Origin: Klebsormidium nitens
Lineage: Eukaryota; Plantae; Klebsormidiophyceae
NCBI GenBank assembly: GCA_000708835.1
Contig: DF237215.1
Span: 66,096-118,773 of the forward strand
Direction: 5' to 3'
DNA: 52,678 nt
The position numbers were made by a program, and so were the translations under genes. Every line of letters starts with the position of its first letter. Within the stretch, counting starts at the first letter, position 1. This document shows positions 8,079 through 40,733 of this stretch, in pieces. The notes beneath the pieces are model-generated. The model saw only the letters and a list, made by a program, of their open reading frames with translations, was not told where the DNA came from and searched no databases.

Positions 8079-8725
8079 TGTGAGGGCCCTGTGGAATTGC
8101 ACCACAGATCTAAAAGAAGGAATGGATCAGATCCTGCCTCGATATCCGAGGCAGAGGTAAAAGGGTTTAAGCAATACCTAGTACGTCAAACAAAAGGAGC
8201 CTGGAATATACACCAGCTGTACTGCAAGCTCGCCACCGACTTCATGACCTAAAGGAGAAGGAAAACTTTGCGGCGGTGAGGGGTTTCCACAAAGCCCAAT
8301 GAGATCAGGCGTAATGCTCGCTAAGGTGAGCTGCCCTGATGTTGACTGGCGCTGCTGCCAGCCTGCTGCGAGGAAGGCTGAATGAAGAGGAAAGCCAGCG
8401 ATGCAGCATGGTGAAACTTGAACTTGAGTTTGACAAGTTGAAGCTTCGAAACGGATGCACTGCATCTATGCAGCATGACATCACCTCCCGCCAAAATTTG
8501 AATCTTGAAGCTTGCTAGCGCACTGCAGCAGGACAACAGCTGGTGATACAGCCTACAGGGGCTGTAGCTAGGGGCAGTGATCAGCGTTGCAGAACGTCTT
8601 ACTAAGGGCGCTTCAATGTTCACAAAGAGGGTCAGATGCAGACGGCTTGTTGCTTGGTCGCATCTAGCTGCTGATGTCAACCAAGACGTACAGCAAAGCA
8701 GCGGAGAGCACAAGGAGTGAGCAAA
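8079..8725. promoter_or_regulatory. Short divergent intergenic region (probable bidirectional promoter) between AHL and MSH7
   Basis: Head-to-head ATGs at 8078 (-) and 8726 (+). Promoter activity is inferred from position only. Confidence 0.4.
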
Positions 8726-11700
8726 ATGGCACAACGATCCATGCTGTCTTTCCTGTCCAAAAAACCCACGGAACATGGTGGTGAAGAAGGGAGGAAGCGA
8801 AAGCGGCGCGAGGACGACGAGCCTAAGTTGACCGTGACGATGCAGGCAATTGCGTGGGATGCTGGGGTGCAAAGGAAGGAAAGCGGGACTCTTTTTGGAC
8901 CTAATGGTCAGGCCCACGCCCAACCAGGCCAGAAGTCTAGTGCAAGGGGAAAGGAAGTAGAGCCTGATTCCCCAGCTTTGTTTGACGGGGTTGGTTCTGG
9001 ACTAAAGCCAGCGGGTGAAAGTCAGGAAAATGGTGGGGAGGTACTGCATGTGTACAAGAAGAGACCCAGGAGCAGTAAGGCGGGATCTGATGCAGGAGAA
9101 GATGGCGCAGCAGCTGTGGGAGTGGTAGAAGGGAATGCAGAGATTGATGAGAAGGAGAGGTTGAGGAAGAGGAATCGGTTGTTGCAGTCAGTGGGGGCGG
9201 ATGATTGCGCTGGCCCGCAGCAAAGCGCGGCGTGGCAAGAGGCGGCTGCCAGGTTTGACTGGCTGGACCCAGGTATGGAATAGACACTGTTAGGGTTTTC
9301 AAATTTGATGCCCAAGGTCCTTGAGAAGAAAAGATATGTTGCTCAGCGAAACCTTTGCAATCGAATGGTGCATTAGCAAGGCAACTGAAAATCTCAATCT
9401 AGTCACAGAATTGCTAGTCCAGCTCCAAGGCTTCTATGAATTTCAACGGTTTTTACTGGCTGGATCTAAGATCAGATAGACGGTCCAGAGTGTCGAGGTC
9501 ATTCCCCTTTCGAGAATCAAGGCATTCCAGTTTGAGATACCTGTGCAAGTAAGTATGCAGTACCAAGACATTCTGCTACCAGTAATGCTGTCCATACTGT
9601 TCAGACAAACTTTCAATAATTCGAAGAGACACTGTAGAATGCTGCATCTGGCCTCAGCGATGCCTAACTGCGAGTGTTTCTCTTTTTGAGCCTCCTGGAC
9701 TGATTTGTTCGTTGATTGTTATTTTCGCACACGGTTCATATCCCCAGAGTCTTTCCCTCGCTTTCATGAGCACTCCAATGACTGCTGTTGAAACCATATT
9801 TGTTGAGAAGCCTTCATTCAAGGGGCTTTGAGGCTTTCAATGAAGGTGTCCCACACAGCTCTGGGCATGCTCCACCTAAAGTGCATTCTGGAATGTTGCA
9901 TTTGCAGGCAAGATCCGGGACAAGCAGAACCGGCGACCCGACCACCCTGACTATGATGCACGCACTGTCAGAGTGCCTGACTCAGTGATGCTCAGGCTGT
10001 CTGGCACTCAGAAGGAATACTGGAAGATCAAGCAGGACTACATGGACATTGTGCTCTTCTTTAAGGTCGGGAGCTTCTACGAGCTGTATGAGCTGGATGC
10101 GGAGATTGGAATCAAGGAGTTTGGCTGGAAGTTGACCCTGAGCGGTGTTGGCAAGTGCAGACAGGTTGGTATCTCAGGCTTGCTGAGTTTGTGACACTCT
10201 GCCCACGGAATGGCCCTTGGCTTTAGGGCGTTTCAATTTGTTGACCTGTATTCTTGTTGAAGGTAAGATTGGCAGATCGAGCTGAGCACGTGCAGAAAGT
10301 TCTGGCAATCACAGCCTGAGCATTTTATCAGTTTCATATCACCAGACTACATTGAGGACTTGAACTTATGGTCTTCTTTTCTACAACCTTTTCTCAGTCA
10401 ATTCACCCAGTGAAGACCAATTTACAGGCAGCCGTGGTAACCTCTTTAAAGTCCACCATCACTATGTTGAATTTCAAACGCAACAGATGAGGCAGGTTTC
10501 GTGTTCATCAAACACATCATCCAGATGCCCGGTAAACAGGAGAAAAAGCAGTCACCTTTTGAATGACTTTTTGTTGATGCTTTCCGGGGTCCCTTTTATG
10601 CGAACAGATCTAGACACAGGGAGACAAGTGCACCTAACTCAGGCGTTTGTACAGGTCGGTGTCCCGGCTTCCGGCGTCGACGACGCATGCCGCAAGCTGG
10701 TCGCCCGTGGCTACAAAGTAGGACGCGTCGAGCAAACCGAGACCGGCGCTGAGGCCAAAGCCAAGCGAGGCCCCTCTGCGATGGTCCAGCGGAAACTGCT
10801 GAAAGTGGAGTCCCCCGCACTTTTGGTGGATGAGATCCGGCAACCAGAGGCGGTCCACTTGCTGGCGCTGAGGGAACTAGAGTTGGGAGACCAGGGAAGG
10901 GCAGTTGAGGCAGGGGAGAGGGAGCAAGTTGTAATCGGGTTTGCATTTGTGGACGCGGCGGCCGGGAGGTTTTACGTGGGGGAGGTGCGGGACGATTCGT
11001 CTAGGTCGGCGCTGGGGGCTCTGCTGGCACAGGTGAGGGGACGTGTCTGCACAGATCTCTTTCTCGAAGTGATGCTAAAGCAGCAAAGGCAGAGATACTT
11101 AGACACATGCCATTGGAGAGTGTGCAATTCGGGTGAACAAGGCACGCCCTTCGCAGAAGAAAAGCGGACTGGTGTTTTGTAACGTTAAGTTGAGTCTTGG
11201 CGAGAGCTGGGCGTTGCTTGGGCCCCCGTGTGCCATCTCGACCCTTCTTCTTCTTCCTCAATAGGGCCCCTTGTCAATCTACCTCTGCCGTGTTTGGCTG
11301 GCCTTATGAGAACTTAGACAGACTTCATGACAAAAACCTTCTCTCGAAATCCCTTGCGTTGACCGTACCTGTGAGGCCGCCTGCAGATTTTTGTAAGTAA
11401 TGAGTTGAGAACATAATTGCAATTTACAGATCGTCCGTTTGTTTTGTTTCTAAGGAACTTTGTAATGCCAACGGTTCCCAGTCTACTTCTGGAAAATACC
11501 TGTGCAGTCATACAGTGCACTTGATTCTAACTTTCTTCGGAGTAGCTTACCGCTGGGAGGGGTATTTTTTGCATTTGTTAGTCACATCCTTCTCTTCAGT
11601 ATGTCCTCTACTGCTTAAGCTAACTTGTCTATTGCTTTAGCTAACTTGTCTTCCGCATTAATCCAGATTGCGCCCCAAGAGATTGTGCACGAGCGGCACG

Positions 11701-14700
11701 GCCTGACTGCAGCAACCCGCAAGCTGCTCAAGCGCGCCCCCATCCCTGGAAGCCTTCCGCTGCAACTCACGCCCCTCGACTCGGGGGCTGAGTTCCTCGA
11801 ACCCCCTGCGGCGCTTGCTGAGATTGCATCGAAGGCTTACTTCGGGTACAGCCAAGCAGGGACTCCGTCCAAAACGCACGAATCGGGGAGCAGAGGCCCT
11901 TTGGCTGAAGCTCATGGGGGGGGAGATGAGCAAGATCCGGCGGGAAGTAGCGGACTTGAGGAGCGATCGAGTGGGACAAGGATCGATCCGGACGCAGAAG
12001 CGCTGCTGTCCGGAAACGGTCCGAGCGTGTCCGCACTCTGGGCGCTCATCTGCCACCTGCGCCGGCTCAAAGTGGCCGCCGAGATGCTGCCACGTGGCGA
12101 GCTGTCGTCGTACGCGGTGTACCGGGGATCCCTCCGCCTGGACGGCCAAACGCTGCAGAACCTCGAGCTGCTGCAAAATGCTGCGGACGGCGGCCGGGCG
12201 GGGACGCTTCTCGCGAATTTAGACAGCTGCGTGACCGCGCAGGGGAAGCGGCTCCTGCGCCGTTGGATCTGCCATCCGAGCAGATCGACGGCCCAGATCG
12301 TGTCCCGGCAGGACGGGGTGGAGGAGCTGGTGGCGAGGCCGGAGCTAGCACGGGCTGTGCGGGAAGAGCTAAGGAAGCTGCCGGATCTGGAGAGGTTGCT
12401 TGGGAGGGTTAAGGCAATGGCGTCGGCGCCAGCTGCAATATCGTACTTTGCGGCGCAGACGCACCAGAAACATGTAAGAAAGTCTTCTGTTTTGTAAGTT
12501 GACTTTGGTATCTGGCTCGAGCCCGTTCGACGGATTGCGAATGTCAGTCTGTCGATCTCGGGCGAGTGCCTTTTGCAGACTACTCAGGGGCTGTTAACCC
12601 TTGCACTGGCGGGATTGTATATTCAACCTCCACGAACGAAGCTCGAGCCACTGCTCGTACGAGCTGTTCAAAGTAGGCTGAATCTGCTTGCACAACGGTG
12701 TGATGCTGTAAAACGAAGTTCCCGGTCATAAGAACGCAAGTCTCTGTTGCGAACGATTTCAGGATTGTGTCTGTCTGACAGTGGGGTTTAAAGCTTGGCC
12801 GCCTGGAAATGTATGCAACTTGACATGCACGGACAACGATACGGACCGACCTAAGAGCAGCGCTTCATTGCCTGCGTTTACTTGCTTGACGGACGTTGAA
12901 CACTCTGGAGTCTTTATGGGGTTTGTCTGTTACCTTTGGTGCCTTTTTCTTTCTTGACAGACGACTCGTGCGAAACGGATGAGGCACTACGTCGGGGCTT
13001 AGCCGAGGGCGATGTTAGAGGGACGAAATGCCGCTGGAGTAAACAACTCCGTGCCCTTGCCTTCGCACCTTCCCTGAACATTTTTTGCGTTCCTCTTCCA
13101 GGTCTCCACTTTCTGCGCCACCCTGGGCGGCCTTCAGCAAGCCTGTGCGGCGCTGACGTCACTCCACGCCCTACCGGACTCTGCTCGCGTCATCCTCAAG
13201 CCGTTCATTAGACCGGAAGAAGTCCGGCTCGTCTCCGAGTCCTTCGACGAGCTGACGTCATTCTTCGACTGGCCCAAGCCCGGTGCAAAAGACCGCGCCC
13301 CGAAGCTGAACCTCAAGCGGGCGGAGGACAGTTCGTCCGGTAAGGCGGCGCCCGAAACTTCGGCGGGAAAGCGAGCGTCCAAAAAGGGGAAGAAGGCAAA
13401 GGCGGAAGACGACGAAGATCCTCTCGGCAGAGAAGTGAAGGCGCTCTCGAGAATAGTCGAAGTTTTCGCGGACCGGAGGCTTGCCACGTGGGGTTCGCTG
13501 ATTGGCGAGGCCCTGGCCCGGGTCGACGTTCTTGTCGCGTTCGCAGCTGCGGCCATGGCGGCAGACGGGCCCACGTGTCGCCCTGTCTTCGTGGACAAAA
13601 CCGCACCGGATTTTGCGCCACATTGTGCGCCGGCATCTGAGCGGGGCAGCGCCGCCGGGCTCGGGCCGAGCCTGGCAACGCCCTCGCCTTCGCCCAGGCG
13701 GACGGGCGCACCCCCCGAGAGGGATCCCTCTGCGGGAGGTGACGTCAGCGGGCGAGAATCAATCGGGGACGGGTTGCCGGAGGAGTGTCAGACGCCTGTT
13801 TCGGAGAGCGGATCAGAGCGTCCGAATGGCGGCGCCGTGTTGCAGATTGAGGGTCTGTGGCACCCGTATGCGATTGGGGGCGGTGGGGGCACGTTTGTGC
13901 CGAACGATCTGACTCTCGGGGGACCGAACTCTGGCGCCGACTTGGATACTTCACAGCCACGTGGCACGCTCTCGGCGAGCCCACGTGGCATGCTCCTGAC
14001 GGGCCCCAACATGGGCGGCAAGTCGACGCTGCTGCGCGCCACGTGCCTAGCCGTCATCATGGCGCAGCTCGGGTGCCGCGTCCCGGCGGAGAAATGCTCG
14101 CTCTCCCTAGTTGACACGATCTTCACGCGGCTCGGCGCGAGCGACCGGATCTTTTCGGGCGAGAGCACGTTTCTGGTGGAGTGCAGCGAGGCGGCCAGCG
14201 TGCTGCGGCACGCGACGGCGGACTCGCTGGTCGTATTGGACGAGCTCGGCCGCGGGACGTCCACGTTTGACGGCTATTCCATAGCGTATGCGGTGAGTGG
14301 GTCCTTATGGACCGTTGCTGCGCTGCTCAGGCCGGACCGGAGTTCCGAGCCTATCGCTCTTCACCGGATCTGTGAAGACTGTACTTTTCAGGAGGGATTT
14401 TTGGAGCACAGAAGCTTTGCAAGCTGAGGTCGGAACGGACGGGCTTCATAGCAGCTTACTTGACTATTCACTAGGTCAGATACTTGCAACCTTACCCGTA
14501 TCCAGTTTTGTGGTATTTCAGTGCTTCGTGCGTCTGTCCGATGCATACCGCCAGTGTCCTTGCAGGGACCCGCAAGACTCTCGTTTCATTCTGAATCTGG
14601 CTCAAACAATCTGAATCAACCCAGGCACTCAGCAGAGACCACGATCACTTCGAAACGTGCCCTTTCGTGCAGGTGTCTTCAACGTGACAAAGACCCTCTT

Positions 14701-15558
14701 GTCTGAATCCCGCCCCCTATCGTCCTACCTGTTGCTTGGTTTTTCCGGGCCGATCCCGTCCCGACTGAAAACTACACCACAAGCATTTCCGGTACTCTCG
14801 TCGAATGAAATTCCTGACTCCTATCAGAAACACACGGCTGAAAAAGCATTCAAAACACATTGCAGGTCCTGAAGCACCTGAGCGAGGCGCTGGACTGCCG
14901 CCTGCTCTTCGCCACGCACTACCACCCCCTCACCGCCGAGTTCGCCTCCAGTCCCCGCATCACGCTCGCCCACATGGCCTGCCAAATGCTTCTCGACGGA
15001 GCGCCCAGCAAAACCCCCCGCGGTGACGCCGAAACGCTTGCTGACGTCAGCGCACTCAGTGATCGCCACGTGTCGCTACCAGAGGCGGACGACGACAACC
15101 TGCAGAAGGAGGGGCAGCTGGTGTTCCTGTACAAGCTGCGGCCGGGCCCGTGTCCAAAATCGTACGGCCTCCAGGTTGCCACGTTGGCAGGGATCCCGCG
15201 GTCAATTGTCCGAGCAGCCGCAGCGGCGGCCCGGGTGATGGAGTCGAAACTAGACAGGGCGTTCAGCGGAGCCGGCAGGCGGGGGCTGGAGTTGCCATGC
15301 CGGAAAGAGTCGGCCTCGGAAGACGGGTGTTTCGGACGGCCTTCGGACAGCAGTGGTCGTCTTGATTCAGCAGAGGACGGGTCAGCGAAAGAAGATGCCG
15401 GTTGTGAGAATCTGACGGGAAGCGAGCTGCGTATCGCCCGAACACTGCTTAGGCAAGGTCTAAGTGGCGGCATTGGATCCATGTTAGGGTCCCGGGCGGA
15501 TGAGGAGTCAGCACACGGAAGTCTCGTCCAGACGTGGCAGGAATTGCAGGCCCAGTAA
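8726..15558 (+). CDS. MSH7: MutS homolog 7; exons 8726-9272, 9908-10164, 10655-11032, 11667-12473, 13102-14292, 14866-15558, ~1290 aa
   Basis: N-terminus [14 protein letters not shown]; [27 protein letters not shown]|VG; Walker [13 protein letters not shown]; Walker [14 protein letters not shown]; LFATHY; [10 protein letters not shown]. No Tudor/PWWP is visible and the lever/clamp region is short. All exon phases sum in frame. Confidence 0.88.
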
Positions 15559-16593
15559 AGACGACTCTTCCACGCATCTTGCTAAAAAAACAGATTTGTG
15601 AATTATTACTAAGGGTGCAGGCTGTTGTGCGGTCTCGTTAAAATGGTCTTCAAATCTTGTAGAACTCACGGCACGCATGAGACTGATATTTCAGTGAGCG
15701 GGAGCCCCAGATGCAGCAAGTAAGCGTACATGACCTCCATCATGGCCTGAACATGGAATGCAAGCGAGCAACTTGCTTGCAGAGAAACAACGTTCTTAAA
15801 TGTTCTCTCGCCATAGAGGGAGTTATTGGTAGGTACGACATCGATGCAGGGTGCTCGGACTAGGCGATACTCACTGATCAGTTTCACCACTCGACCCATG
15901 GGCACTCCCGAAGGTATCTTCTCAACATCGAGAGTCTCATCCCCTTCATTAATTGAGTTGTTGAGCTGTTTGAGACAAGTCTCGGTCCTAGTAGGGATAA
16001 GTGTACCATTAGTGAACTATAATATATCTTGCTCGAATGGATGTTAAAAAAGATGGCAATTAATGATCGACGAATTCTCGCTTGATTAGTACGTGTTGGT
16101 GCTATTGTCGCCAGAGCCTGAATGCAGCAATCTGGGGTACTAATTATAACACGTCACTGATCGTGCCGACCGTCACATCTGTGTAGATCATACGTACCAC
16201 GTGATCCACCATCATTGTGTGTTACGTACCAACGAGTTAAGTCCGACTCATTGAATGCATGATACAAGGTCAAAAGCTTGATTAATGTACGTTGCCTATC
16301 TCATGCAACCATCGCAGTACGCAACGAGCTGCTGACACCAAGCTAGACTCACGTACACTCGATCAAACCTTTAAAAGCGACCCAATACTTTTAGTACATC
16401 ACGACGTTTGTCTCAGCCTCGGCAGCTTGAGGTGGACCTGGCATCATCTTTTTCCTTACATCTACCAAATTTTTGATGCTTTGACGCAATATTCTTGGGC
16501 AACACTGTCAAAACCTGAATCTAGCAGAACATCTCCAAGGCCTCTTAGCTGAATTAATTGCATCATATTGGCTTGGAAGTCGTCGAGCTTTTC

Positions 16594-16805
16594 TTGACCT
16601 TTCAAGTTTGGAGGGTGATCACAAGCACGAGGGTGTGCTGACGCCATCATTGACCTCTCAAGTTGGAGAGTAATCACAAGCACGGGGGTGTGCTGACGCC
16701 ATCATTGATCTCTCAAGTTGGAGAGTAATCAAAAGCACGAGGGTGTCATCATTGACCTCTCAAGTTGGAGAGTAATCAAAAGCACGAGGGTGTGCTGACG
16801 CCATC
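16594..16805. repeat. Tandem repeat of ~4 copies of a 55-bp unit overlapping the stop codon of the gene at 16776-21165
   Basis: Unit ttgacctctcaagttggagagtaatca(c/a)aagcacgagggtgtgctgacgccatca starts at 16594, 16650, 16705 and 16752. The third copy has an 8-bp deletion. Confidence 0.92.
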
Positions 16806-19800
16806 GATGACGATGTCAGGGCCGCACTGACCGGGGCAGCATCTCATGGTCACCCCGGCTGCGTTGCAGCACTTGTTCGGCAACGGTCCGAATGGGTCGC
16901 AAAAGTCGTTGGTGCAGCTCTGAAGCGGTCCTGCAAAAGGCAGCATCTTTGCGGGTCAGTGACCGAATTTGAGATAACAGAAAGTTAAGGGCGGCTGATG
17001 ATGTGGAAAGTCCCCCCCGTTACTTTATTACGTCATGTATAGGTGACCACTGACAGTGTTGCTGATCAGTGCATGCGTAAGAGCGACGTCGCAAGCAATA
17101 ACTGTCGGTGTTGTTTGCTCAGTTGTCCCATTAGCATACTGGCCGCATACCTGCCCCTTAGGTCCATCTAAGCTTCTGACAGCAATCGACTGGCCCGGTT
17201 TTCAGCTTTCTGATCTGATGACGTCATGAGCTACCGCCCTGAGGGTTCCTTATCGGTGCCAATATGCCTGTCACTCAGCTTCGAAGCCAGTTCGACCCCG
17301 CTCAAAAAAAGCCATCCGTGAGCCTGAGTCAAAAGCCGAAGCTTGGTCCGAAAGCGCAGATGAGAGCGAAGACGAAGTTTTTTGAAAGACGGGGAAACAG
17401 CATACCGTATGAGAAGAGCAAATGCATTACTCAGACGGCGTCTGCACTATTATTAACCGGCTCAGATTCACTATGGCAGCAAATCTGCCTGTACCTTGCA
17501 CTTCGATAAGGAGCAAGTTTACAATCCTGAACGGTTATCAACCGACTAAACCGGACCTGTTGGAGCAGGAGTTGGCGCAGGGGTTGGAGCCGGAGTAGTA
17601 GGAGCCGGAGTAGTAGGAACCGGGGTGGTAGGAGCCGGGGTAGTGGGGACAGGCCCGGGGGTAGCGCCGCCGCTACCGAAGCCGAGGCATGTTGGGTTCG
17701 TGGTCCCGTCAGAGTTGGGCGTACTGGGGCCGCAGAGACCGGGGCAGCGGAGGCCGAGGGATCCCTCGGAGTTGCAGCACCGGTTGGGAGCGGAGCTGGC
17801 GGTGTCGCAGCGGTCGGCGCAGGTGGAGATAGGACCCGGGGTAGGAGCTGGGGTGGTGGGTACCGGGGTGGTCGGAGCCGGGGTGGTGGGAGCCGGGGTG
17901 GTGTGTACCGGGGTGGTGGGAGCCGGGGTGGTGGGAGCCGGGGTGGTGGGTACGGCCGGGGTGGTGGGTACGGCCGGGGTGGTGGGAACCGGGGTGGTGG
18001 GAACCGGGGTGGTGGGAGCCGGGGTGAAAGTCGTGGGCCCGGGGGTTGGTGCAATCACTGAGCACAAAGCAACGCAGTTGATCAGCTGCACTACCTAGGT
18101 CCACTAAAAGCATTGCATAAACATGGAACATGACCTACGCGTGGAGCAATTTAACAAAGACTGGCTTGAGATGGTTAGCCTGCGTCAGCTGAACAATTAG
18201 CGGCTGTCTGATCAAGTGAAGTTGTTGCATGTGCTTTAATCAGCAGTCATGATCGACAGGACGGATTTGATCTGCTTCAGTGGGGAAGGGAAATCGACGT
18301 CACGCTGAAGTCCAGAAAACGTCAGCCAAAACTCCCAGTGGGCGTGTTGCTTTCAAATGCTGCCACGTACGTTGATTGAAAGCTAGCTTGGGCTCACTTT
18401 TCTGCGGCATCGACATAGCTCAGAATCTGAGGAGCCCTTCATCCAAAAGCATGCCTGCAAAGCCTTCTGCTTGATGCCCAGATCACATGAGTTGCTAAAC
18501 ATTTGGAATCTGAGTTCCAAATGCCACGTCATATCAAGTAAGGTGCGAGCTCACCAATGCTCCTGCCCACAACGTAGACAACTGAGTCAAGTTCGAAGTC
18601 CAGTGCATCCGCTATGGCCAATCTGCATGTATGGAACACAGGAAGGTTTGGCGATATTAATCAGGTTTGATAACCAGACTTTAGTGTGGTTCTTTGACCA
18701 ATAACCGCGTTAAGCCATGCTAAAGCCGTGATTAATACTGCTCGAGTCAGGTTATTGGACACTCAACCAGCACTGAACCAGCCCGTCACCAACTATTTTC
18801 AACCGCCAAAAGTCCCTCATGTGCCACGAAGCACGCAAGTGTTCCAGTGACTTCAGTACAGCCCAGTCAATTTCACCTTAGTGTTGGACCTGGATTAAAG
18901 AGAAGCAGGCAAGATTTAACTGCGGATGTCCACATTCACTGGCCGAGGAGTAGTAGACCTACGTAACATTGATTGAGTGCAAAGACATTCGAACTTCGGT
19001 CCGGCCGGGTTTACGTGCTGCAAGGTTAGTATATAGCGACCAACTCGTAACAGCCGGAGATTTGCTCCCCGTTCCTTCTTCGCTGCTTAGATAAAGATGA
19101 CAACTTGGGCTCGCGCAAGAAGAGCCCAAACACTCTGAGGAGACATGATTGGAGGATTAGATTATTGGGCGTTCATTTACCTGATGTGTACAGTGTCTCC
19201 CATAGAGACGGAGATAGGAGCAGTTGTGAGAAGTCTCGTGTAGCCATCGTACGCAATGTGATGTGTGCTATTGTCAGCAAAGTTGTCCACATACTGTGCG
19301 GCATTGCTGTTAGGATTGACATTGTCGATGGATACGGCCTTTCCATCACTTGCCAGGGCCACGTTATCACGGGGTGTAAAGGCGCCGTTCCCCACTGTAC
19401 CGAAAAGAGAGGCAGCAATCAGATTGGCAGAAAGATGGCTGAAAGCAAATTGTTGCAGACCAGAGGGCTTCTAAAAGGCAGATGATTCAGAAACGGAGGG
19501 CTAGATTGGAGCAGACAAAAGGAACACGTGATGTTGAAGAATGTTTGCTTGACAAAGCGGACGGGAAGCAGACAAAGTATAGGGGAGGAGAAGGCTAGAG
19601 AATAAGAGAGCAGTGAAAAGAGTAAAGCAGAGTAAGGGGGGGGGGGGAGAGAAGACAGCTTAGATGTGGGTAGTTAAGTAGAACCATTTTGCAGACGGGT
19701 GATTGGCAGGTTACTTTTGAGAGAAACAGAGCAAAGAAATCAGACCCATCCAGATCCAAGATGCAGGGCCCAACGTGACATGCTTCTTAAAGAATTTGTG

Positions 19801-21165
19801 CGCTGCAAATACTGCAGAGAGAAATGAAAAGCAACGTCATGGAGGCTGCAAGTTGAGAACTTGCCTTCGATCGTTGCAGATTGGGTTTCAAGTCCTTGTC
19901 CAATCAGCTTGAGGCAAGACTATTGGATATTAGAGTACAATCATTCAGAAGGGGGAATTGACATATAGCCACTCACAGCCTCTCATACTCACCTTGTAAC
20001 CGAGAATCATCGAAATATGATTGGAACTCACCTTTCACAAAGAGCGCAAAGATGTCATTGAATGCGTCGACATACTCCAAGTACTCTTCCGACCCAAACA
20101 CATATTGGAATGTGAGCTGGCCATTGCCTTGTGCGGTCCCTTTGAAGTCCAGGATCGAGGCATCATTGGTCGTGCCATTGTTGATCTGGCTCAACAATGA
20201 GTCTCCAGGTTCGCCATTGATTGTAAAGCTGCTCTCCGCGAGGTTCTCGGTCTCAATGGACAGTTCTCCAGAGCCACACGTCAGCACCACTCCGCTGGAA
20301 ATGCCATATTCAGAGTTCAAGGCGTGCGAGCCGTCGAGTTGGAAGATGCCGGAAGCAGAGGTTGCCCCCGTATACACAACGGAAGACGCATCAACAGCGA
20401 GGAGACTGTTGGCTCCGACAAGAGTCGTGGCCAGACCTGGAAGAGTAAAACGGGCTCAATGTCAGATTAACTAGGGACACACATTGACACTATCAGTTCT
20501 TGTTACGTAAATAAGCAGGCGTAAAAGGGGTCTCAGTGTCCAGATCTGGCAGGTACACAATTGAAGGCGACACACGCAGGTGACATCAGCCTTCTAAGCG
20601 GATTGTGCTCAAGGACAGACTCTGTAATTCTACTTTGTCGAGGCAAAATGTCAAACTTCTCTGAGCTGCATGGTAGTCGGAGACTGCATGAATCCCTTCA
20701 GGAAAGAAAGTCTGCTTACGTATGACAAGAAGTTTACAAGGTGCGCTTATTGCTTATTGATTCTGTTGTCAGGATGACGTCAGATTAAATTACAAGCATC
20801 CGACTGGTTTGGGATTTGAGAGCTGCACATCGTGTGAATAGATGTAGGCAGTGTCTCACAAGCAAGCCTGCACGCAAGTGTCTCATAGATGACACACCGG
20901 CAGTAAACCTACCCAAAGCATCGGTAGCCTCCACAAACGAGTTGGCCAACAAACGGCGCTCAGCTCCAGTGCTCGTCCTCAGGATGGTCGCCTTTTGGCG
21001 TGCCGGCTGAATCAATGTTGCCTTGCCAGCGCCGCTCGCTATCTCGCTCAGGGGTCGCATGCCAAGCGCAGTTTCGCTAAGAAAGACGAGAATCAACAGG
21101 AGAACATACGAAGCCACCATAGCTGAGCTGGAGATCCTCGCGGTGGACAGCAGAGAGGGCGCCAT
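16776..21165 (-). CDS. Secreted protein: signal peptide, RRLL, choice-of-anchor L-like domain, PTTPA stalk, Cys module, stalk, Cys module; exons 21165-20913, 20436-20032, 19394-19181, 18622-18555, 18057-17557, 16930-16776, ~531 aa
   Basis: Hydrophobic VLLLILVFLSETALG; FQYVFGSEEYLEYVDAFNDIFALFV; NVAL..DGKAVSIDNVN; IAYDGYTRLLT; HIR|LAIADALDFELDSVVY. Phases 1,1,2,1,1 give one open frame. The exons at 18622 and 16930 are not in the ORF track. The last donor (GTCCGG) is weak. Confidence 0.82.
17560..18040 (-). repeat. Coding 15-bp repeat encoding PTTPA/PTTPV pentapeptides in two blocks flanking a Cys module
   Basis: Repeated ccggggtggtgggag on the + strand; translation PTTPVPTTPAVPTTPA on the - strand. 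Confidence 0.9.
19636..19647. repeat. G12 homopolymer in an intronic purine-rich tract
   Basis: Seen directly in the sequence. Confidence 0.9.
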
Positions 21166-22424
21166 TGATGTTGGTGCTCTACTTGTGCTGCAAGCTAGGA
21201 ATCATCAAGCTGGGCCCCTGGAAATGGCGCTAGATCTTTCGAGGAAGCAAACCCACTTGTCCAGATTCATCTTCAAAAATGCTCTCGGATTACTCTTCAA
21301 GCGAGCTGCTGAGACTCAGAGAGTACATTAGGTATATTGTATACGTACTACGAATGGAACTGGAAAGAATCGCCCTGCACTAAGGTGTCACATGTATCGT
21401 ATGCTGCACATGGTGTCCTTCAGCCCCGAACAGCTACCGGTAGTCACTTGCGCCGGCGGCGTGCGCCAATTGGCTGCCATGCAGTGCACTGAGACGGTAC
21501 GGTTACCGGTAGCTGCCAGTGCACGTGGCCGCCGCCCTCCGCCTTGCCGGCGGCAGCCCGGGGCTACATATCTACCGTACTACGTAGTACGCACGGTACA
21601 GGTAACAGGTTACAGCCTGAGGGCCCAGGCCCCTACTACGGTACGGTTACCGGTATACCAACGACGGAGTTCTGACATCGTCGGCTCCCAGGCCGACTGT
21701 TCTCCGGTCAGGATCGGCTGGACCTCTGAACCGGTCGGCTTGTGCGATCAGCCAAACACCTGATGATTCTAGCTGTCGGCTTTTCCGCCGACGCCCCTCG
21801 GTTGAGTCGTCGGCTGACGTTTGCCCGGTGTGACGGCTCGTGTCGAGCACTGATTATTATACGAACGTTGCAATTAGGGCCGGCGATCGGACTGACGGCA
21901 CTAAGTCCCACTGCACGGACAGCCCGCTATTTCCGGTAAGTCGGTTCAGGGATGCCCTCAAGCTGCCAGTTGGTAGTCCGATTGACTGAACCGTAATTTC
22001 CGTCCAGTCAACCGGTACGGAAGATCCGACCACACGCAGCTTCCAGTCGAAAGAATCTCAGCAGTGAGCACTGAGCAGGAGTCAGGACTAGGACTCGGGA
22101 GTCGGGAGTCGGGAGGATGCAGGGCACAATTTCGCGGGATCGCCCAATCCATACGTCGGCCCTCGGGCTGTGACTTGTGATGCGCAACCCCCTTTTTAGG
22201 GCGCGGGGCCGGCCTCCATGCGCATTGAGACTGAGTCGTGTCCGGACTCGCTCCTCAAAGATATTAGGGCATAAGTTGTGGGGTTGCTTACTCTGCAGTA
22301 CGTGGTGGCGCAGCGCCATTGGGTATTCGACCTTAGCGTCAAACAGGGTCAGTGAAAGGTCGGTCAAGCTAGTATATACGACTTGGCGACTGTGGGCCGA
22401 GGGCTTTGCCATCTCTCTCGTGCA
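21166..22424. promoter_or_regulatory. Divergent intergenic region between the two Cys-module genes, CpG/GTAC-rich with internal repeats
   Basis: Head-to-head ATGs at 21165 and 22425. An exact 18-bp repeat lies at 21494 and 21638 and a perfect 16-bp palindrome at 21576-21591. Regulatory role is inferred. Confidence 0.4.
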
Positions 22425-25400
22425 ATGGATGCCTTTAATGCAAGGAGCTGGACTTTCTGGATGGGTAGACTCCCTTGCTGCCTCCTCTCCTGCTTCCTGA
22501 TTTTTCTGCAGTCAGCCGTGCTCCTTGCCGGGTTTAGTGTGGCTACTGACAACGGCAAAGTGATCATCCTGGAGGATAGTGTGATTGGAAATATTGGCTC
22601 TTTGGAAGCTCAAGCAGTCATCAAGGCTGGCTTCACTCCTGACATTGTCAATGCCACAGTATGGGCCACCATGACAACTGCACAATTTGAGGCCTACCGT
22701 GGAATCTTGATTGGAGATCCAGGATGTTCTTTGCTTGCAAAAGGTGAGTCCGAGGTTGGAGTTGTGGGATTAAATACCCTGCCTTCTCCATCGGCCAGGT
22801 GTCATATCTGCCTGCTGCAGGTACTTCAATGACGTCATATTGACATGTAATTATGTCCATGGTGCAATTATGCATGATCGTCCCCTCAGGCCAGAGGGCT
22901 TTACTGACCAACCTTTAGCTGGCCCTACTGTTGGCAGCCAGTGCAAAATCTCTGTGAATGCATTGAACTGCCAGCTTGCTTGCCAAAGCTGCTTGGTGAG
23001 TAGTACAATCCTGTTCTCGCAAGATTGCCAGCTGCATCTGCAATTTTGATGAATTACTGACCTGCAAAAGTATAGCCCGTCTTGCTTTTGAAGCTTACGC
23101 ATATGATTGCCGGTTGCAGCTGCCGACTTTCCCCTATATTTCAACTATGGGGAGGCGGCCATAAACAACGCACCCACCTGGATCGCTGCTGTCACTGGAA
23201 ATATCCTCATTGTTGGGACAGACCCAGCCTACCATTACAATGAGGGCAGGACAGGAGCCAAAGTCCTGATTGAGAGTGGCGTTGCCTTTGCAATATCCAG
23301 CTCAATGGGAACGGGGGCCTATATCTGCCTGTCCTGCTCTGGGGGTGCAGGTCCTGATTATGAGAGTTGGCTGAGCAACTTTGGAGGCACGTGGAAGCTC
23401 CGTCAGCCAGACTGTGACTCCACAATCACAATATGTGAGAATCAAAACTTCGAAACTTGTAGGACTCATGAAGATCTTGAGATATGTGAATCAGACTTGT
23501 ATTCTTGTGGAGTCATGCAGTCTTTGAAAGGATGAATGGCCAGGGCTGCAATGCAAACCTTGCATATGGAGCAAGGTCTTTGCTGGATATATCTTCGATG
23601 CAACGCAGGATCCTACCAGTACCTCGGTATTGCCTCTGTTTGCTTTGGCATCTCCAGTAAACAGATTAGAGTGTCCCTGATTCAGCAGTGACAAGCATGT
23701 CGACTATTTCTTACAGTGGCCACTCATCCAGCCCTTTCCAACCTCACAAGCGCCGACCTATCCGACTGGCAGTGCTCCTCCCACGAGACCTTCGAATCCT
23801 TCAACACAGAAAGGTTCTTGCCACTGGCAAAAGCCAGCGACAATGATCTGCCCTACATTGTTGCCAGTGGACAAAATCTCGCTGCAATCAGTCCCCCGTT
23901 TCCACCTCAACTCCAGCCCCCTCCACCTTACCCCCCACTCTTCAATCCTCCACCACTTGGCTCTTTCCCTCCTGCAAGTTTACCCCCTCCGTCTACCACC
24001 TCTGCCTCGAGTACGAATGGTGAGTAGGAAGTGGGAAGTCTTGAACTGCACAACATGCTGCTCTTTGCGTTGTATTCTGCTTGCTTACAAGTCACCTCAA
24101 GTTGATACTGGAAACGTATAACACACTGCCTCCAGCTTTCATTGATAGGCATTGGTTGAAGCTTGACTATTTACCAGTACGTGTAAGATCGAGATTAAAC
24201 TGCCCTTTTGAGCTGTTGTTTCTTTGTTCCTTGCCAGCTCTTGAGCGTTGCAACGTCCCCTGTGACCCTTACTCCAGCCTTCCTAACCGCTGCTGTGATG
24301 CTGAGGGCCTTCTTGGCATATGCTGCCCTGGCGCTTGTGGAAATACGGTGGCCTTATCAGGAGGGGGGTCAGTTGCTACTTGTTTGGGCCCTGGTGGGGC
24401 CTCCCCTATCAATTATCCTTCGACAAGTCCAAGCATTCCGCCACTAAACCCGACAGAGTCCCCTTCCCCAAGCGGGACGCCTGCTCCAACAGTGAGGAGT
24501 AAGTCAAGTACTGGTCGCAATGCTTCTGAGTTTGAAGTCTGAATAGAGGGCTATTTAAGGTTCAACTTCGTGCTACTGCACCATCTTCTTTCAGCATTGT
24601 ATTGTGCTCGCGCACTGTGTTTGGAGCGTGTGTTTGGAGCAGAACATTACTAAGAATCTATGAAACCCATTTCGAGTCATCATTACATGGTATCGATCTG
24701 GAACGCTTTGTCTGCACAGGTGAACTCCAGCGCTGCAGTGATCTGTGCCCTGACGCCAATTTCCCTAATCGTTGTTGCGATGCCGTTGGACTCTCAGCTG
24801 TATGCTGCCCCGCCCAATGCGGTGATATCGTCTCTTTGCCGGGAGGAGGGTCCGTTGCAACGTGCCAGGGCTTGGGAGGGACCGTCCCAACCTTGACATC
24901 CCAACCACTTATACCGACTCCTTCGAACACCCGTGGCACAGATGGGCCAATTCTTTTTCCATTTCAATTTTGCGACCCAGATTCCGACTTTCCAAATCGG
25001 GTGAGTTGCTTACTTTTATGACTAGGTGATTGATGTCGAGACGAGTTCAAACCGAGACTTTCCAGGCTCTCAGTGTCGGCGTTTTCCTCATCGCCAAACC
25101 CTGACGCTTCTTGATTGTCTAGAGAAAAGCACACCAATCAATCTTTCTGGGGACGTTCTTAGCGTCGATATGACCAGATCTACTGCATGCCACCATGACG
25201 TCTTGAAGAAAGTCGGTTCGAAAAGAATGTAACTGATGCCGATGAAAACAAGGGATTTGCCTTCCGTCCAAGAAAACAAAGCTTTGTAGACCATCGTGAA
25301 GCCACAACTTCTCCATAAATTTATCAATCATCTTCATGCAGCCCAGTCCCTTTCTGCGGCAGCAATAAGCTTCTGAAGCTCGTTGCCTAAGGGGTTCGGC

Positions 25401-28400
25401 TATTTGTCCAGAAGTTTCTAGAACCATGCAACTGACTCTCGTTGGACATCTTGAAACACATGTACATCGTCTGTTGAAAGGGATCTGTTCATTCATTGAA
25501 GACGTTGGAAGTCTCAGAGCTTTGGCATGGCAATTTCTAGTCTAACCAGGCGTCAATCTCCGAACTGGCCACGACGCCACCATTCATACCAGTGCCTAAC
25601 TAGACTGGTATCCTCCTTTTTGCAGTGCTATAACGTAGACGGCTCCAGCTTTACCTGTTGTGGCCAGGAAAGCTGCCGCACAGGTCCCGCCAGTGCTATT
25701 CCTCTCTGCGCTAACGGCCTTCCCGGAGTGACACCTACCCAAGCGCCCGGTATCCCCAGTCCGAGCCCCAGTACGACAAGCTCAACCCCCAGCACTACGA
25801 GCCCACTAACCCCGAGCCCAACACCCGGCACCCCCGAGCCGAGCGCAACTTCTTCTAGCACTCCAAGCCCGACCCCAAGCACTACCAGTCCAACGCCCAG
25901 CATGACAGTACCGAGCCCAACGCCAAGCACCCCAAGCCCCACGACCAGCAGTCCAAGCCCGACCCCAAGCACACCGAACCCCGTTTCGAGCACCACAGCC
26001 CCGACTACCAGCACACCCACTCCTTCCCCGAGCACTACTCCGAGCACTCCGGGCCCCACTTCAAGCACCCCGAGCCCAACTCCCAGCACTCCTAGCACTC
26101 CGAGCCCGACCCCAGGCACTCCCAGTCCAACTTCCAGCACTTCGAATCCCACGCCAAGCCCCCCGAGCCCAGTCCCAAGCACCCCGAGCCCCACGACCAG
26201 CACCCCGAGTCCGACCTCAAGCACCCCGAGCCCACTTCCGAGCACAACAGCCCCCATTACAAGCACACCGACCCCTTCTCCGAGGACTACTTCGAGCACT
26301 CCGAGCCCAACGCCAGGCACAACAGCCCCCACTACCAGCACACCGACCCCTTCTCTGAGCACTCCGAGCCCATCGCCGAGCACACCAAGCCCGGCCACAG
26401 GCACTCCGAGCCCAGTCCCAAGCACCCCAAGCGCCACGACCAGCACACCGAGTCCGACCCCAAGCACACCGAGCCCCATCCCCAGCACAACAGCGCCCAC
26501 TACCAACACCCCCACTCCTTCGCCAATCACACCCAGCCCTACGCCGAGTACACCGAGCCCAAAGCCAAGTACACCGGCTCCCAGCCCCACTACACCGAGC
26601 CCTACTTCGACAAGCGCAACAGGTAAGATATGACGACTTGTTCGTAGTGCAGACTACCATTCGATTGATCGAAATCCGTACTCAATTTGTCTCGTGATTG
26701 GTCAGGTTGCATTCGAATCAACTTGAAGCCAGCCTTGCAATGGCGTTTGATCATTGATTCGATCTGGTTGCGCTGATTTACAGTAGTAGCCCTCGTAGTA
26801 GCAAGATAAATCGGTTTGAGCAGTTCCAATAACACGATATCGAAACGGGAAGATGTGCCAATGCTCGTCTATCCGAGACTGAATTCAGATGTCAGATGAG
26901 TTGATTAGAAGCGGTTTGAGATATTTGCTAAATCGATCTCGAAGCTCCTATGTTGATACACAGCTAGCGGCCACCGTGTATCCACGAGCAGTTGCTGAGC
27001 ATTTATAGTTCGTGGCGAGTCGTTAGAAACAGATTGGAGTGCCCACTTGTCTGAGGAGGTTTTCAACTTTCATATGATTGTGATTCGTGTCTGTTGCCCA
27101 CAGTCCCGTGTACAAGCCCCTTACAGCCCCAAGCATCACTCAGAAGGAGAGTGCTGGTGGTATTATCCAGAGTATTCAAGGAGACGGCTATTGTGGTCTG
27201 TCAGACACCGTACCCGCGGATATCCCACCAGAGTATTTCGACGTCTCTTATGCCATCGACTTTTACGGGAGAAATGTCGATGATGCCGCGCCAGGGGAGG
27301 TTTTCAGCTACACAGTGAAGGTGTCGGGGCCCTATTTCGAGGCTCTTCTCGAGGTGAACTCGGTGACAAATGTTATCACGTTCCAAGTGGAGGGGGCTAC
27401 GGTCCAGATCGATGCCACTACCGGCGATATCCTGGATCAACGCGACGCACCGGCATCGGCTGAAAGCGGCGGACGCAAATTGCTGGCTGAGAGCAAAGAA
27501 CTTTCGCCACCCTGCGCAAAGAGGGAGGCAACATGCACCGGGGTGACGTCGTTCCAGACAGCGACGCTTTGCCAGGGTATCACTAAGACGTCTCTCTTGA
27601 AAACGGCCTGCGCCAAGGTTGCAAGCTTCTTTCGATCGAGAGTGCCGAAGTTGCCCCCGACAATCCTGGATAACTTGTGCAGCTTTTTGGTGGACACAAC
27701 AAAAAAAGGATGTGAGAAAGCAATCGACTGTGAGACGTACGGGCTAGGGTGAGCGTTTTTACTGCCTGTACTAGTCATTTCCAATCGTAACTCGTAGCCT
27801 AGTTCTGCATGTCCAGACTCCAGACAAAACCTTCTGAGCATTGACCCTTCTTCAGAGCTGACCGTATCGGTCAGATCCGCATAGTAGTGCAGCTGGGGGT
27901 CTTCAAGCTGTGGAGTTTCTTTTGGTCACGTGCATCTCTGCGAAGGTCGACCCTGACACCTGATCAAAGTTTGGTTCTTGAAGAGCCTTTCTTTCGGTTG
28001 GATGTGCGAGTTCTTTCTAGAACCCGTTTACTGATCATCAATCTGCTCCATCTAGTAATGGAGCGGACTCAGGGGACTCGAGAGACGTGCGTGGTTTCGT
28101 CTTTGCTCAAGAAAGACAAACTTGCGCTGGTTTATCCATACTACTTGAACTTGAAGTACTCGCATGAAGCTTTCCGAAACAATCTGGCTGTTGAGAACTG
28201 CTTATATCAAGTCTGCCGTTGTGGTCTTGTCGACTGATTGTTCTTGATCTTCGTGTCTGCAGGACTTGTTGCAACTTTACACATTCATGTGCCGACTTCG
28301 ATTTCACATTCTCGGGGTCCTTCGACCAGTGCTTGATTGATTGCGTACAGATTGCCACTGATTGCTGCACAAGCGTCCCACTGCCTCCTGTCGCGGTTCA

Positions 28401-40100: not shown

Positions 40101-40733
40101 GCGGAGCTGGCTGCCCTCAGGAGCGGAAGCAAGGCTTTTCCGGCCTTAGGAACGGAGCGGGACAGGCCGGAATCAGGGAGCGGACTCGTGATTGAAGGAA
40201 TGGAAGTCAGCAAGGAAGGCCGGTCTTCAGTGCGGTGGGCGGACGGAGAGTCCACGGAAGGCGTCGAGCCGTCTGAACGAGTTTCCCAGGAAGCCACGGG
40301 GAATAGCGTTTGGGGAAGTCACCCCGGGCAGGCGAGGGGGATCCCTCGGGGGCCTTTGCTGACGTGGACCGACTTAGCGACCTGTCTGGAGCACAGCGAA
40401 AACGAACCGGGCAGAGAACGCTTCGTTCTAGTGGAGGCAGCGAGTGTTGGCAGCGGCCGAAATGGTGCATCCGTGCGTGCAGCGCAGCGCGTGCACTCGG
40501 TTGAAAAATTGCTAGTCAAAAATGCGAGAGAAAATGCATACATTTCAAGTAAACCGTTTAGTTACAGTAAGAAGTGGGGGCAATCCAGCGGGACGGCTCC
40601 CCTTAGAACAGCAAAGTCAGCGGCTGAAGTGCCGCCACATATAGCTATAAATGCGGCGCATAGGAAAGAGAAGCAGAACAAAGTCGGGGATGCCCCAAAA
40701 CTGAACCGAGCAAACCCGACAACCCTCTTTTGA
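34194..40733 (+). CDS. Long coiled-coil protein, CCDC57-like at the N-terminus; exons 34194-34546, 35247-35532, 36235-36899, 37253-37454, 38007-40733, ~1410 aa
   Basis: LIEEKEKEL.AL..RR and SDFKYNLKLLDERDAELEK resemble the recalled animal CCDC57 motifs (LL.RKEEEW.ALQ; EDF.YNL..L.ERD.ELERYD). Heptad-rich E/R/A/L sequence; phases 2,0,2,0 are consistent. Confidence 0.75.
35760..35777. repeat. (GA)9 microsatellite in an intron
   Basis: Seen directly in the sequence. Confidence 0.9.

Follow-up and report, generated by a model that had tools for sequence, protein, structure and literature searches.

The window analysed here is a 52,678-nucleotide (nt) stretch of contig DF237215.1 from the alga Klebsormidium nitens (assembly GCA_000708835.1, scaffold of 118,773 bp), and all coordinates are positions within it. 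Its minus strand carries KFL_002660130, publicly a hypothetical protein of 287 residues (GAQ86034.1, here P0001), which was recovered at 100% identity when exon 2 was used as query in a HMMER search of a representative protein library. Profile and motif comparisons confirm that this gene encodes a choice-of-anchor L domain, a domain that is elsewhere almost confined to the surfaces of bacterial cells. An initial annotation of this DNA had proposed that three exons rebuild the motif series of the domain, and the motif peptides it quoted are present in the minus-strand translation. The bounds it gave coincide with exon ends in the gene structure below, 18555 being where exon 4 ends and 20436 where exon 2 begins.

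Exon 1, 20913..21120, minus strand: starts at the ATG at 21120 as in the public model and ends in phase 1 before GTAGGT; placed by tblastn of P0001 residues 1-70.
Exon 2, 20032..20436, minus strand: N-terminal two thirds of the choice-of-anchor L domain, with the FQYVFGSEEYLEYV and FNDIFALF motifs; ends in phase 1.
Intron 2, 19395..20031, minus strand: 637 nt, GT..AG, within the domain; seen in a spliced contig.
Exon 3, 19181..19394, minus strand: middle of the domain, with the NVAL, VSIDNVN and YDGYT motifs; ends in phase 2 before GTAAAT.
Alternative terminal exon of the public model, 18853..18890, minus strand: tail SNTKVKLTGLY and stop codon; from the P0001 sequence, tblastn and the annotated gene span.
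Exon 4, 18555..18622, minus strand: last strand of the domain, with the motif LAIADALDFELDSVVY; acceptor after ...catgcag, donor GTGAGC, ends in phase 1.
Predicted exon 5, 17557..18057, minus strand: PTTP[AV] stalk, Cys module 1 and a second Thr/Pro stretch; ends in phase 1.
Predicted exon 6, 16776..16930, minus strand: Cys module 2 and the stop codon (16778-16776); acceptor ...CTTTTGCAG at 16931.

Each exon was scanned separately against NCBIfam, in which the choice-of-anchor L model NF038133 has 219 hidden Markov model (HMM) positions and a curated cutoff of 27 bits. The queries of the searches were individual exons or the public protein of 287 residues. Exon 2 alone matches positions 5-127 (96.1 bits, E 1.9e-27) and exon 3 alone matches positions 130-196 (39.6 bits, E 3.7e-10). 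The exon 4 piece, only 36 residues long, matches positions 194-218 and scores below the cutoff by itself (17.2 bits, E 2.7e-3). The three matches are colinear and nearly contiguous on the model, follow the genomic order on one strand and together give full-length coverage, which places the domain assignment far beyond chance. Pfam PF26766 (Choice_anch_L) is already present on the public protein in precomputed annotation. A local Pfam-A scan gave no match, the copy used having no model for choice-of-anchor L, and the domain was seen via NCBIfam and the precomputed PF26766 only. In an alignment of 46 domains all invariant columns are retained in K. nitens, with the motifs F-x-Y-V-F-G-S-E-E-Y-x-E, F-N-D-x-F, V-S-I-x-N-V-N, Y-D-G-x-T and L-A-I-A-D-x-x-D-x-x-x-D-S. 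The initial annotation had suggested a search of NCBIfam and InterPro, and the NCBIfam search, made by single exons, returned a significant match to the family. Its three-exon reconstruction and its family assignment were borne out by the NF038133 matches on all three exons, the middle intron seen in the spliced contig, the precomputed PF26766, the complete motif set and the predicted fold described below.

Transcript contigs were available from three runs labelled with the same species as the window DNA, in which coverage is thin, with a depth of 1-3 everywhere. A contig from run X1 joins 20032 directly to 19394, skipping 637 nt, and the CT..AC on the plus strand reads as GT..AG on the coding strand. 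Because of this direct junction, a spliced product of KFL_002660130 exists. Further contigs lie over exon 1 (20963-21246), exon 2 (20032-20118 and 20045-20303) and exon 3 (19263-19394). The domain itself is interrupted by three introns. Within intron 3, at 18664-18712, a contig from run X3 matches over 49 nt only (3 mismatches) before continuing into unrelated sequence, and this match is probably a dispersed repeat or an element resembling a miniature inverted-repeat transposable element (MITE).

The best sequence matches of the domain are prokaryotic, which would be in keeping with bacterial contamination or a mis-assembly of the stretch. However, the GT..AG intron verified by the spliced contig already refutes contamination, and the probability left to this explanation is practically nil. 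Three introns cut the domain, the GC content of the gene is like that of its surroundings, and eukaryotic genes with introns lie on both sides on the 118.8 kb scaffold. These neighbours include a MutS/MSH6-type mismatch-repair gene at ~8700-15600 on the plus strand (domains I, II, III and V over several exons; 1290 residues in the public protein) and an Mpv17/PMP22 gene. Contamination is thus excluded by the spliced intron and the intron-containing eukaryotic flanking genes, and KFL_002660130 is a genuine intron-containing nuclear gene of K. nitens. The argument of the initial annotation against contamination, from introns and plant-type neighbours, therefore holds, with the spliced contig and the MutS/MSH6-type and Mpv17/PMP22 genes as its evidence.

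The public model of KFL_002660130 appears to be mis-terminated. Exon 3 is spliced in it to an acceptor at 18890 and the reading frame closes after 11 more codons, so that the domain is cut at HMM position ~196. The model drops the C-terminal strand of the domain and ~229 downstream residues comprising a stalk and two Cys modules, all of which are unannotated in GCA_000708835.1. Exon 4 codes for L-A-I-A-D-A-L-D-F-E-L-D-S-V-V-Y, which compares with the family consensus h-I-K-L-A-I-A-D-x-x-D-x-x-x-D-S-x-V-F, in which at least 90% of the 46 aligned domains keep the three Asp and the Ser. As this near-invariant last motif is missing from the public model and restored by exon 4, the exon is accepted as part of the gene on the basis of homology. 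Exon 5 fits the phase of exon 4, and the acceptor of exon 6 has a good polypyrimidine tract that is matched by the phase-1 donor at 17557. Between KFL_002660130 and the MutS gene the public annotation shows no further gene. The resulting six-exon model has consistent phases at all junctions and totals 1551 nt, equal to 516 codons and a stop. Since no reads lie over the region, we infer from these sequence features that exons 5 and 6 belong to the gene.

Several observations count against this extended model. RNA supports one of the five introns (intron 2), with the other four resting on canonical GT..AG ends and matching phases. RNA coverage of 16000-18550 was not found in the three runs, and exon 4 is without RNA evidence. 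The 3' end of the public model differs from that of the extended model, with annotation stopping at 18853. In addition, if the donor of exon 4 is left unused the open reading frame stops 8 codons later, giving a head-only protein. Each of these points would suit a real product that is either the public 287-residue protein or the head-only form, with the stalk and Cys modules downstream belonging to a separate unannotated gene or being non-functional remnants. This is unlikely, however, as the public terminal exon deletes the most conserved C-terminal strand of the family, which exon 4 restores, and exon 5 lacks an in-frame Met of its own upstream of the repeats. The canonical GT..AG junctions fit in phase throughout, with the four long open segments staying in a single series of frames, and the very thin coverage of the runs extends across the whole gene.

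The extended model would encode a secreted protein of ~516 residues, in which a putative signal peptide and an N-terminal choice-of-anchor L head are followed by a stalk and two Cys modules. Exon 1 codes for the putative signal peptide, recognised by inspection as a hydrophobic core followed by A-L-G, and for the first helix of the domain. A second in-frame ATG lies further upstream, at 21165. The stalk is encoded in exon 5 by a 15-nt tandem repeat of 11.4 copies at 17850-18026, which reads P-T-T-P-[AV]. A second Thr/Pro array, also of 15 nt, has 3.9 copies at 17586-17644, and Cys module 1 lies between the two arrays at ~17821-17680. Exon 5 gave no Pfam or NCBIfam match. The Cys module has ~48 residues with the pattern C-x3-C-x7-9-P-N-[RK]-C-C-x3-G-x5-(C)C-P-x2-C-G-...-C. 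Cys module 2, in exon 6, meets a 55-nt tandem repeat (16594-16805, 4 copies, 84% matches) that runs from the last codons of the exon into the 3' flank, so that the stop codon and the final Cys of the module fall in its first unit.

The same Cys module occurs in the neighbouring gene, which lies head-to-head with KFL_002660130 and is divergently transcribed (22383-26633, plus strand; 970 residues in the public protein, no Pfam domain). This neighbour has an unrecognised N-terminal region, a PPPP-rich stretch, two PNRCC Cys modules and a Ser/Thr/Pro-rich tract of >300 residues at 25527-26633. Its copies of the module lie as follows.

Third and fourth Cys module copies, 24249-24400 and 24734-24880 (within 24234..24898), plus strand: in the divergently transcribed neighbour gene.

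The four copies, two per gene, share 37-50% identity and 13 invariant columns. Their presence in both the KFL_002660130 region and the neighbour points to a small family of local or lineage-specific range. Searches of Pfam, NCBIfam, PDB sequences and the ESM Atlas returned no match to the module, and its AlphaFold2 (AF2) model is too poor for a structure search, with a predicted local distance difference test (pLDDT) score of 62.8. A hevein-like identity, considered in view of the hevein pattern PN-x-CC-[SN]-x-x-G, was dropped, since the module lacks the aromatic residues that bind sugar and has no support from any profile.

Exons 5 and 6 contain no match to PEP-CTERM, Por_Secre_tail, CHU_C or LPXTG in Pfam or NCBIfam. 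The initial annotation had described the bacterial sorting signal as replaced by a hydroxyproline-rich glycoprotein (HRGP) stalk and Cys modules. This stands as a description of the anatomy, but HRGP is a label of composition and the attachment of these parts to the head is a prediction from sequence. Similarity to plant HRGPs, namely the chimeric wall proteins of arabinogalactan-protein (AGP) or extensin type, lies in the secreted chimeric design and in repetitive, non-contiguous Pro (TP, AP, VP) of the AGP type. In contrast to these proteins, the K. nitens protein has no SPPPP extensin motif and no glycosylphosphatidylinositol signal was seen. The stalk may be hydroxylated and glycosylated, and PT-rich linkers occur in bacterial proteins too. 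With this qualification, the domain probably sits on a plant-style stalk.

AF2 modelling of residues 60-276 of the public protein, from the 46-sequence alignment, resulted in a pLDDT of 90.7 and a predicted template modelling (TM) score of 0.87. Compared with ten Atlas clusters carrying PF26766, the model has TM scores by query of 0.77-0.85 over 187-207 residues, and on these models the domain is predicted to share its fold with bacterial Choice_anch_L members. A PDB sequence search with exon 2 returned nothing meaningful, and Foldseek of the AF2 model against PDB gave E > 0.2 for all matches. With VIA-align wide the best match is a carbohydrate-binding module (CBM), CBM4, at Z 5.0, while CBM61, MAM, glycoside hydrolase GH16, polysaccharide lyase PL7 and CBM51 jelly rolls follow at Z 3.5-4.7. 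This similarity may reflect only a common beta-sandwich arrangement. Matches this weak (Z of at most 5, Foldseek E > 0.2) do not justify the transfer of function from solved folds. In the 46-domain alignment the conserved positions are mostly Asp, Glu, Asn and Gly in loops, which suggests that the loops are metal-stabilised. No paper was found in a literature search on the gene identifiers, PF26766 and 'choice-of-anchor L'.

A working model of the protein follows from these features. The head would be a beta-jelly-roll of ~215 residues, rich in conserved Asp, Glu and Asn, that binds a ligand, possibly with Ca2+; the likeliest ligand would be a glycan or a polymer of some surface. This binding role is a guess and a weak point of the model, given that the CBM similarity is weak and members of the choice-of-anchor L family are without a tested function. 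The Thr/Pro pentapeptide-repeat stalk is probably O-glycosylated and extended, holding the head off the wall, and the two small disulfide-rich PNRCC modules may tether or cross-link the protein at its base. The whole would act as a cell-wall or extracellular-matrix protein. The head domain would ultimately be bacterial, acquired by horizontal transfer either directly or via another eukaryote, after which three introns were gained and the head was joined to modules common to the neighbour gene. In such a protein the alga would keep the bacterial head-spacer-base topology with eukaryotic parts for the spacer and base. Taken as a whole, a spliced nuclear gene for a secreted head-stalk-Cys protein of ~516 residues with a bacterial-derived head is the best explanation of the locus and is held with reasonable, though far from complete, confidence.

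The distribution of the family is strongly prokaryotic. The representative search found 3371 relatives at E <=1e-3, with the best 120-150 listed and length windows applied. With exon 2 as query, P0001 itself is the only one among the matches listed with >50% identity, and the next match has 45%. When one genome per prokaryotic species was scanned, at least 577 of 600 candidate loci were confirmed, spread over Bacteroidota, Pseudomonadota, Actinomycetota, Cyanobacteriota, Acidobacteriota, Verrucomicrobiota, Planctomycetota and Cloacimonadota, and two methanogen-related archaea. Among these loci, identity to K. nitens does not exceed 47% on the best tblastn segment, or 42% where the match is near full length. 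Across searches, identity to any bacterial member is at most ~48% and mostly 33-44%. Atlas clusters of the family are 98-100% Bacteria, with one cluster carrying PF26766 labelled 63% Eukaryota. No orthologue with >45% identity stood among the matches listed in the representative, word-index or metagenome searches, the metagenome scan for close relatives of P0001 found none, and tblastn with P0001 detected no paralogue of the domain within the window.

The initial annotation had also suggested a survey of land plants and chlorophytes. No named plant, streptophyte or chlorophyte homologue is present among the best 150 of the 3371 matches, nor among the matches listed in word-index searches that included nr, UniRef, EukProt and MMETSP, one of them admitting proteins of 237-754 residues. 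A match to Hexamita inflata P0003 (CAL6111636.1, E 1.5e-19 against exon 2) was rejected, as it is a spurious match between an internal tandem repeat and a 32-residue stretch. P0003 has 960 residues with ~11 near-identical repeats of 86 residues, and could mislead automated screens for horizontal gene transfer as a false positive.

A small number of relatives look eukaryotic. The MMETSP transcript protein P0270 (366 residues) is a true member of the family (NF038133 E 2e-66), in which a putative signal peptide precedes the domain and a TP/SP stalk and Cys-rich tail follow it, the general layout also of the K. nitens protein. P0270, P0123, P0007 and P0015 all match NF038133 (E 1e-44 to 2e-66), combine a putative signal peptide with the domain and have 32-41% identity to K. 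nitens. P0015, P0123 and P0007 each lie alone on contigs of 1.6-1.7 kb with non-coding flanks of 60-520 nt and 190-290 nt and microsatellites. By contig shape these are probable, though unproven, eukaryotic transcripts. A literature search for two SRA accessions of the sister contigs came back empty. P0123 and P0007 carry Cys-rich tails and no bacterial anchors, while P0015 ends just after the domain. The PNRCC module of the K. nitens base is absent from the Cys-rich tails of P0270, P0123 and P0007. The contigs that carry P0126 and P0193 are gene-dense, and the genes around them are typical of prokaryotes.

Bacterial choice-of-anchor L proteins, such as those of Nostocales with PEP-CTERM and of Bacteroidota with type IX secretion system (T9SS) or CHU_C signals, resemble the K. 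nitens protein in the domain itself, its motifs, its full HMM length and its fold (TM 0.85). In both, the domain is N-terminal behind a signal peptide and forms the distal unit of a modular extracellular protein. In the bacterial proteins it is typically followed by PKD, SprB, cadherin-like, Calx-beta, TSP3 or He_PIG/DUF11 domains and by C-terminal PEP-CTERM, T9SS (Por_Secre_tail) or CHU_C signals. Some bacterial members have OmpA N-terminal to the domain, and in P0126 the domain is C-terminal, after cadherin-like/Big_9 repeats. The C-terminal sorting signals, the 'choice of anchor', are a feature of the bacterial proteins and not of the domain model. The K. nitens protein differs from bacterial members in having no PEP-CTERM, T9SS or LPXTG signal, three introns within the domain, a pentapeptide stalk, orphan Cys modules and a long branch.

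A comparable architecture is known from the unrelated choice-of-anchor A (CAA) family. CAA domains occur in the adhesive Trailins of diatoms, for which transfer from bacteria has been proposed, and are reported to be structurally similar to ice-binding proteins (10.1101/2023.03.06.531300). They are also found in the Jonah cyst-wall lectins of Acanthamoeba, which bind cellulose (PMC6541295). As in K. nitens, these proteins place a bacterial head without its bacterial anchor in a secreted wall or adhesive protein, near Pro/Thr/Ser-rich or Cys-rich regions. The difference, besides the domain family, is that function has been shown for CAA (adhesive trails, cellulose binding) but for no L member.

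The relationships of the domain were analysed in a tree of 75 rows (IQ-TREE, LG+C20+F+G4 with posterior mean site frequencies, PMSF), in which the bootstrap did not fully converge. K. nitens forms a clade of eight rows (ultrafast bootstrap, UFBoot 98 / SH-aLRT 95) by the successive joining of P0126 and then P0193, the two sequences in bacterial context, to an inner group. This clade lies inside one of 36 rows (95/94) with Actinobacteria, Acidobacteria, Planctomycetes and archaea. A cyanobacterial (endosymbiotic) origin was rejected, as cyanobacterial members fall in a different clade of the tree. Given that the family is mostly prokaryotic, that the algal gene is isolated in the green lineage and that the wider clade has bacterial genes, an ultimate bacterial origin of the domain by horizontal transfer is likely on these sequence comparisons. 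To judge by its three introns, its long branch and its fusion to host modules, the domain has long resided in a eukaryotic genome. The gene is a credible but unproven case of borrowing from bacteria.

The tree also holds observations that speak against a simple transfer. The K. nitens terminal branch is very long, at 1.78 substitutions per site, and its sister group (P0123, P0076, P0011, P0015 and P0007; UFBoot 100 / SH-aLRT 75) is eukaryote-like. In an approximately unbiased (AU) test a single clade for all eukaryote-like rows, including MMETSP P0270, was not rejected (p = 0.10). With several long, compositionally odd rows and a bootstrap short of convergence, the placement of K. nitens may be affected by long-branch attraction. 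As the nearest tree neighbours are eukaryote-like, a direct, Klebsormidium-specific bacterial transfer is not established, and the transfer may not have been from bacterium to Klebsormidium. The claims of the initial annotation are narrowed accordingly. Its term 'bacterial-type' suits the bulk of the family, as judged by the confirmed loci and the Atlas clusters, but not the closest neighbours in the tree. Its proposal of horizontal transfer keeps the likely bacterial origin, with a direct step into the alga as one possible route, given the eukaryote-like sisters and the design of P0270. The selected function implied by its word 'domesticated' would be a putative one. The phylogeny it had suggested does place K. 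nitens with two sequences in bacterial context, although the five nearest rows are eukaryote-like and the branch is long.

It may instead be that the domain did not come directly from bacteria but through an older transfer into a protist or algal lineage, followed by spread between eukaryotes or patchy loss. The five-member sister group, three of whose members sit alone on short contigs, the P0270 architecture, the AU result and the Atlas cluster labelled 63% Eukaryota would all agree with this. However, the eukaryotic nature of the sister contigs is judged from contig shape only, MMETSP cultures are not axenic, and all eukaryote-like rows are long-branched and open to long-branch attraction. 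Their identity of 32-41% to K. nitens is also no higher than that of bacterial members. Such an indirect route is possible but is regarded as doubtful. An ancient eukaryotic family that descended vertically and was lost in almost all sampled lineages, without any transfer, is much less plausible still and considered very improbable. The existence of eukaryote-like relatives would suit it, as would the long branch and three introns, which fit a long stay in a eukaryotic genome. Against it, the searches above list no named homologue from plants, chlorophytes or other streptophytes, members of the family come from many bacterial phyla and from two archaeal lineages, and the K. nitens clade is nested in prokaryotic diversity with bacterial-context sequences as its next relatives. 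An ultimately bacterial head, by whichever route, thus remains the preferred reading.

The Klebsormidium genome is central to the question of how green algae moved onto land, a transition to which the gain of genes from soil bacteria is one debated contributor. The locus offers a contamination-proof example of a prokaryote-dominated surface domain in a spliced algal gene, seemingly re-engineered with a eukaryotic stalk and Cys modules. It also corrects a truncated public gene model and makes a family of several thousand members, none with a tested function, accessible to experiment. As this is one gene, apparently lineage-restricted, and its Pfam domain is already tagged in public databases, it is a useful lead rather than a surprise. 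A broader and rather speculative possibility is a hidden eukaryotic branch of the family. In this scenario a bacterial adhesin head would have been acquired a single time and then rebuilt again and again into secreted proteins of the wall or matrix, in Klebsormidium, the MMETSP protist and the eukaryote-like transcripts. Pro-rich stalks and lineage-specific Cys-knot bases would stand in for the sorting signals, and the Klebsormidium base would have arisen by exon shuffling with the neighbour gene. If this were true, the protein would contribute to surface adhesion or to contact between alga and bacteria in a terrestrial streptophyte alga.

Two further observations concern the surrounding DNA. 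Between the two head-to-head genes, at 21425-21655, the 18-nt element ACGGTACGGTTACCGGTA has two exact copies 144 nt from each other and a third copy at 72%; these copies sit in the upstream region common to both divergent genes. At 36139-40733 on the plus strand lie long Glu/Arg/Ala-rich open frames of coiled-coil type, of 254 and 937 residues, where the GC content of the window is highest (up to 62%).

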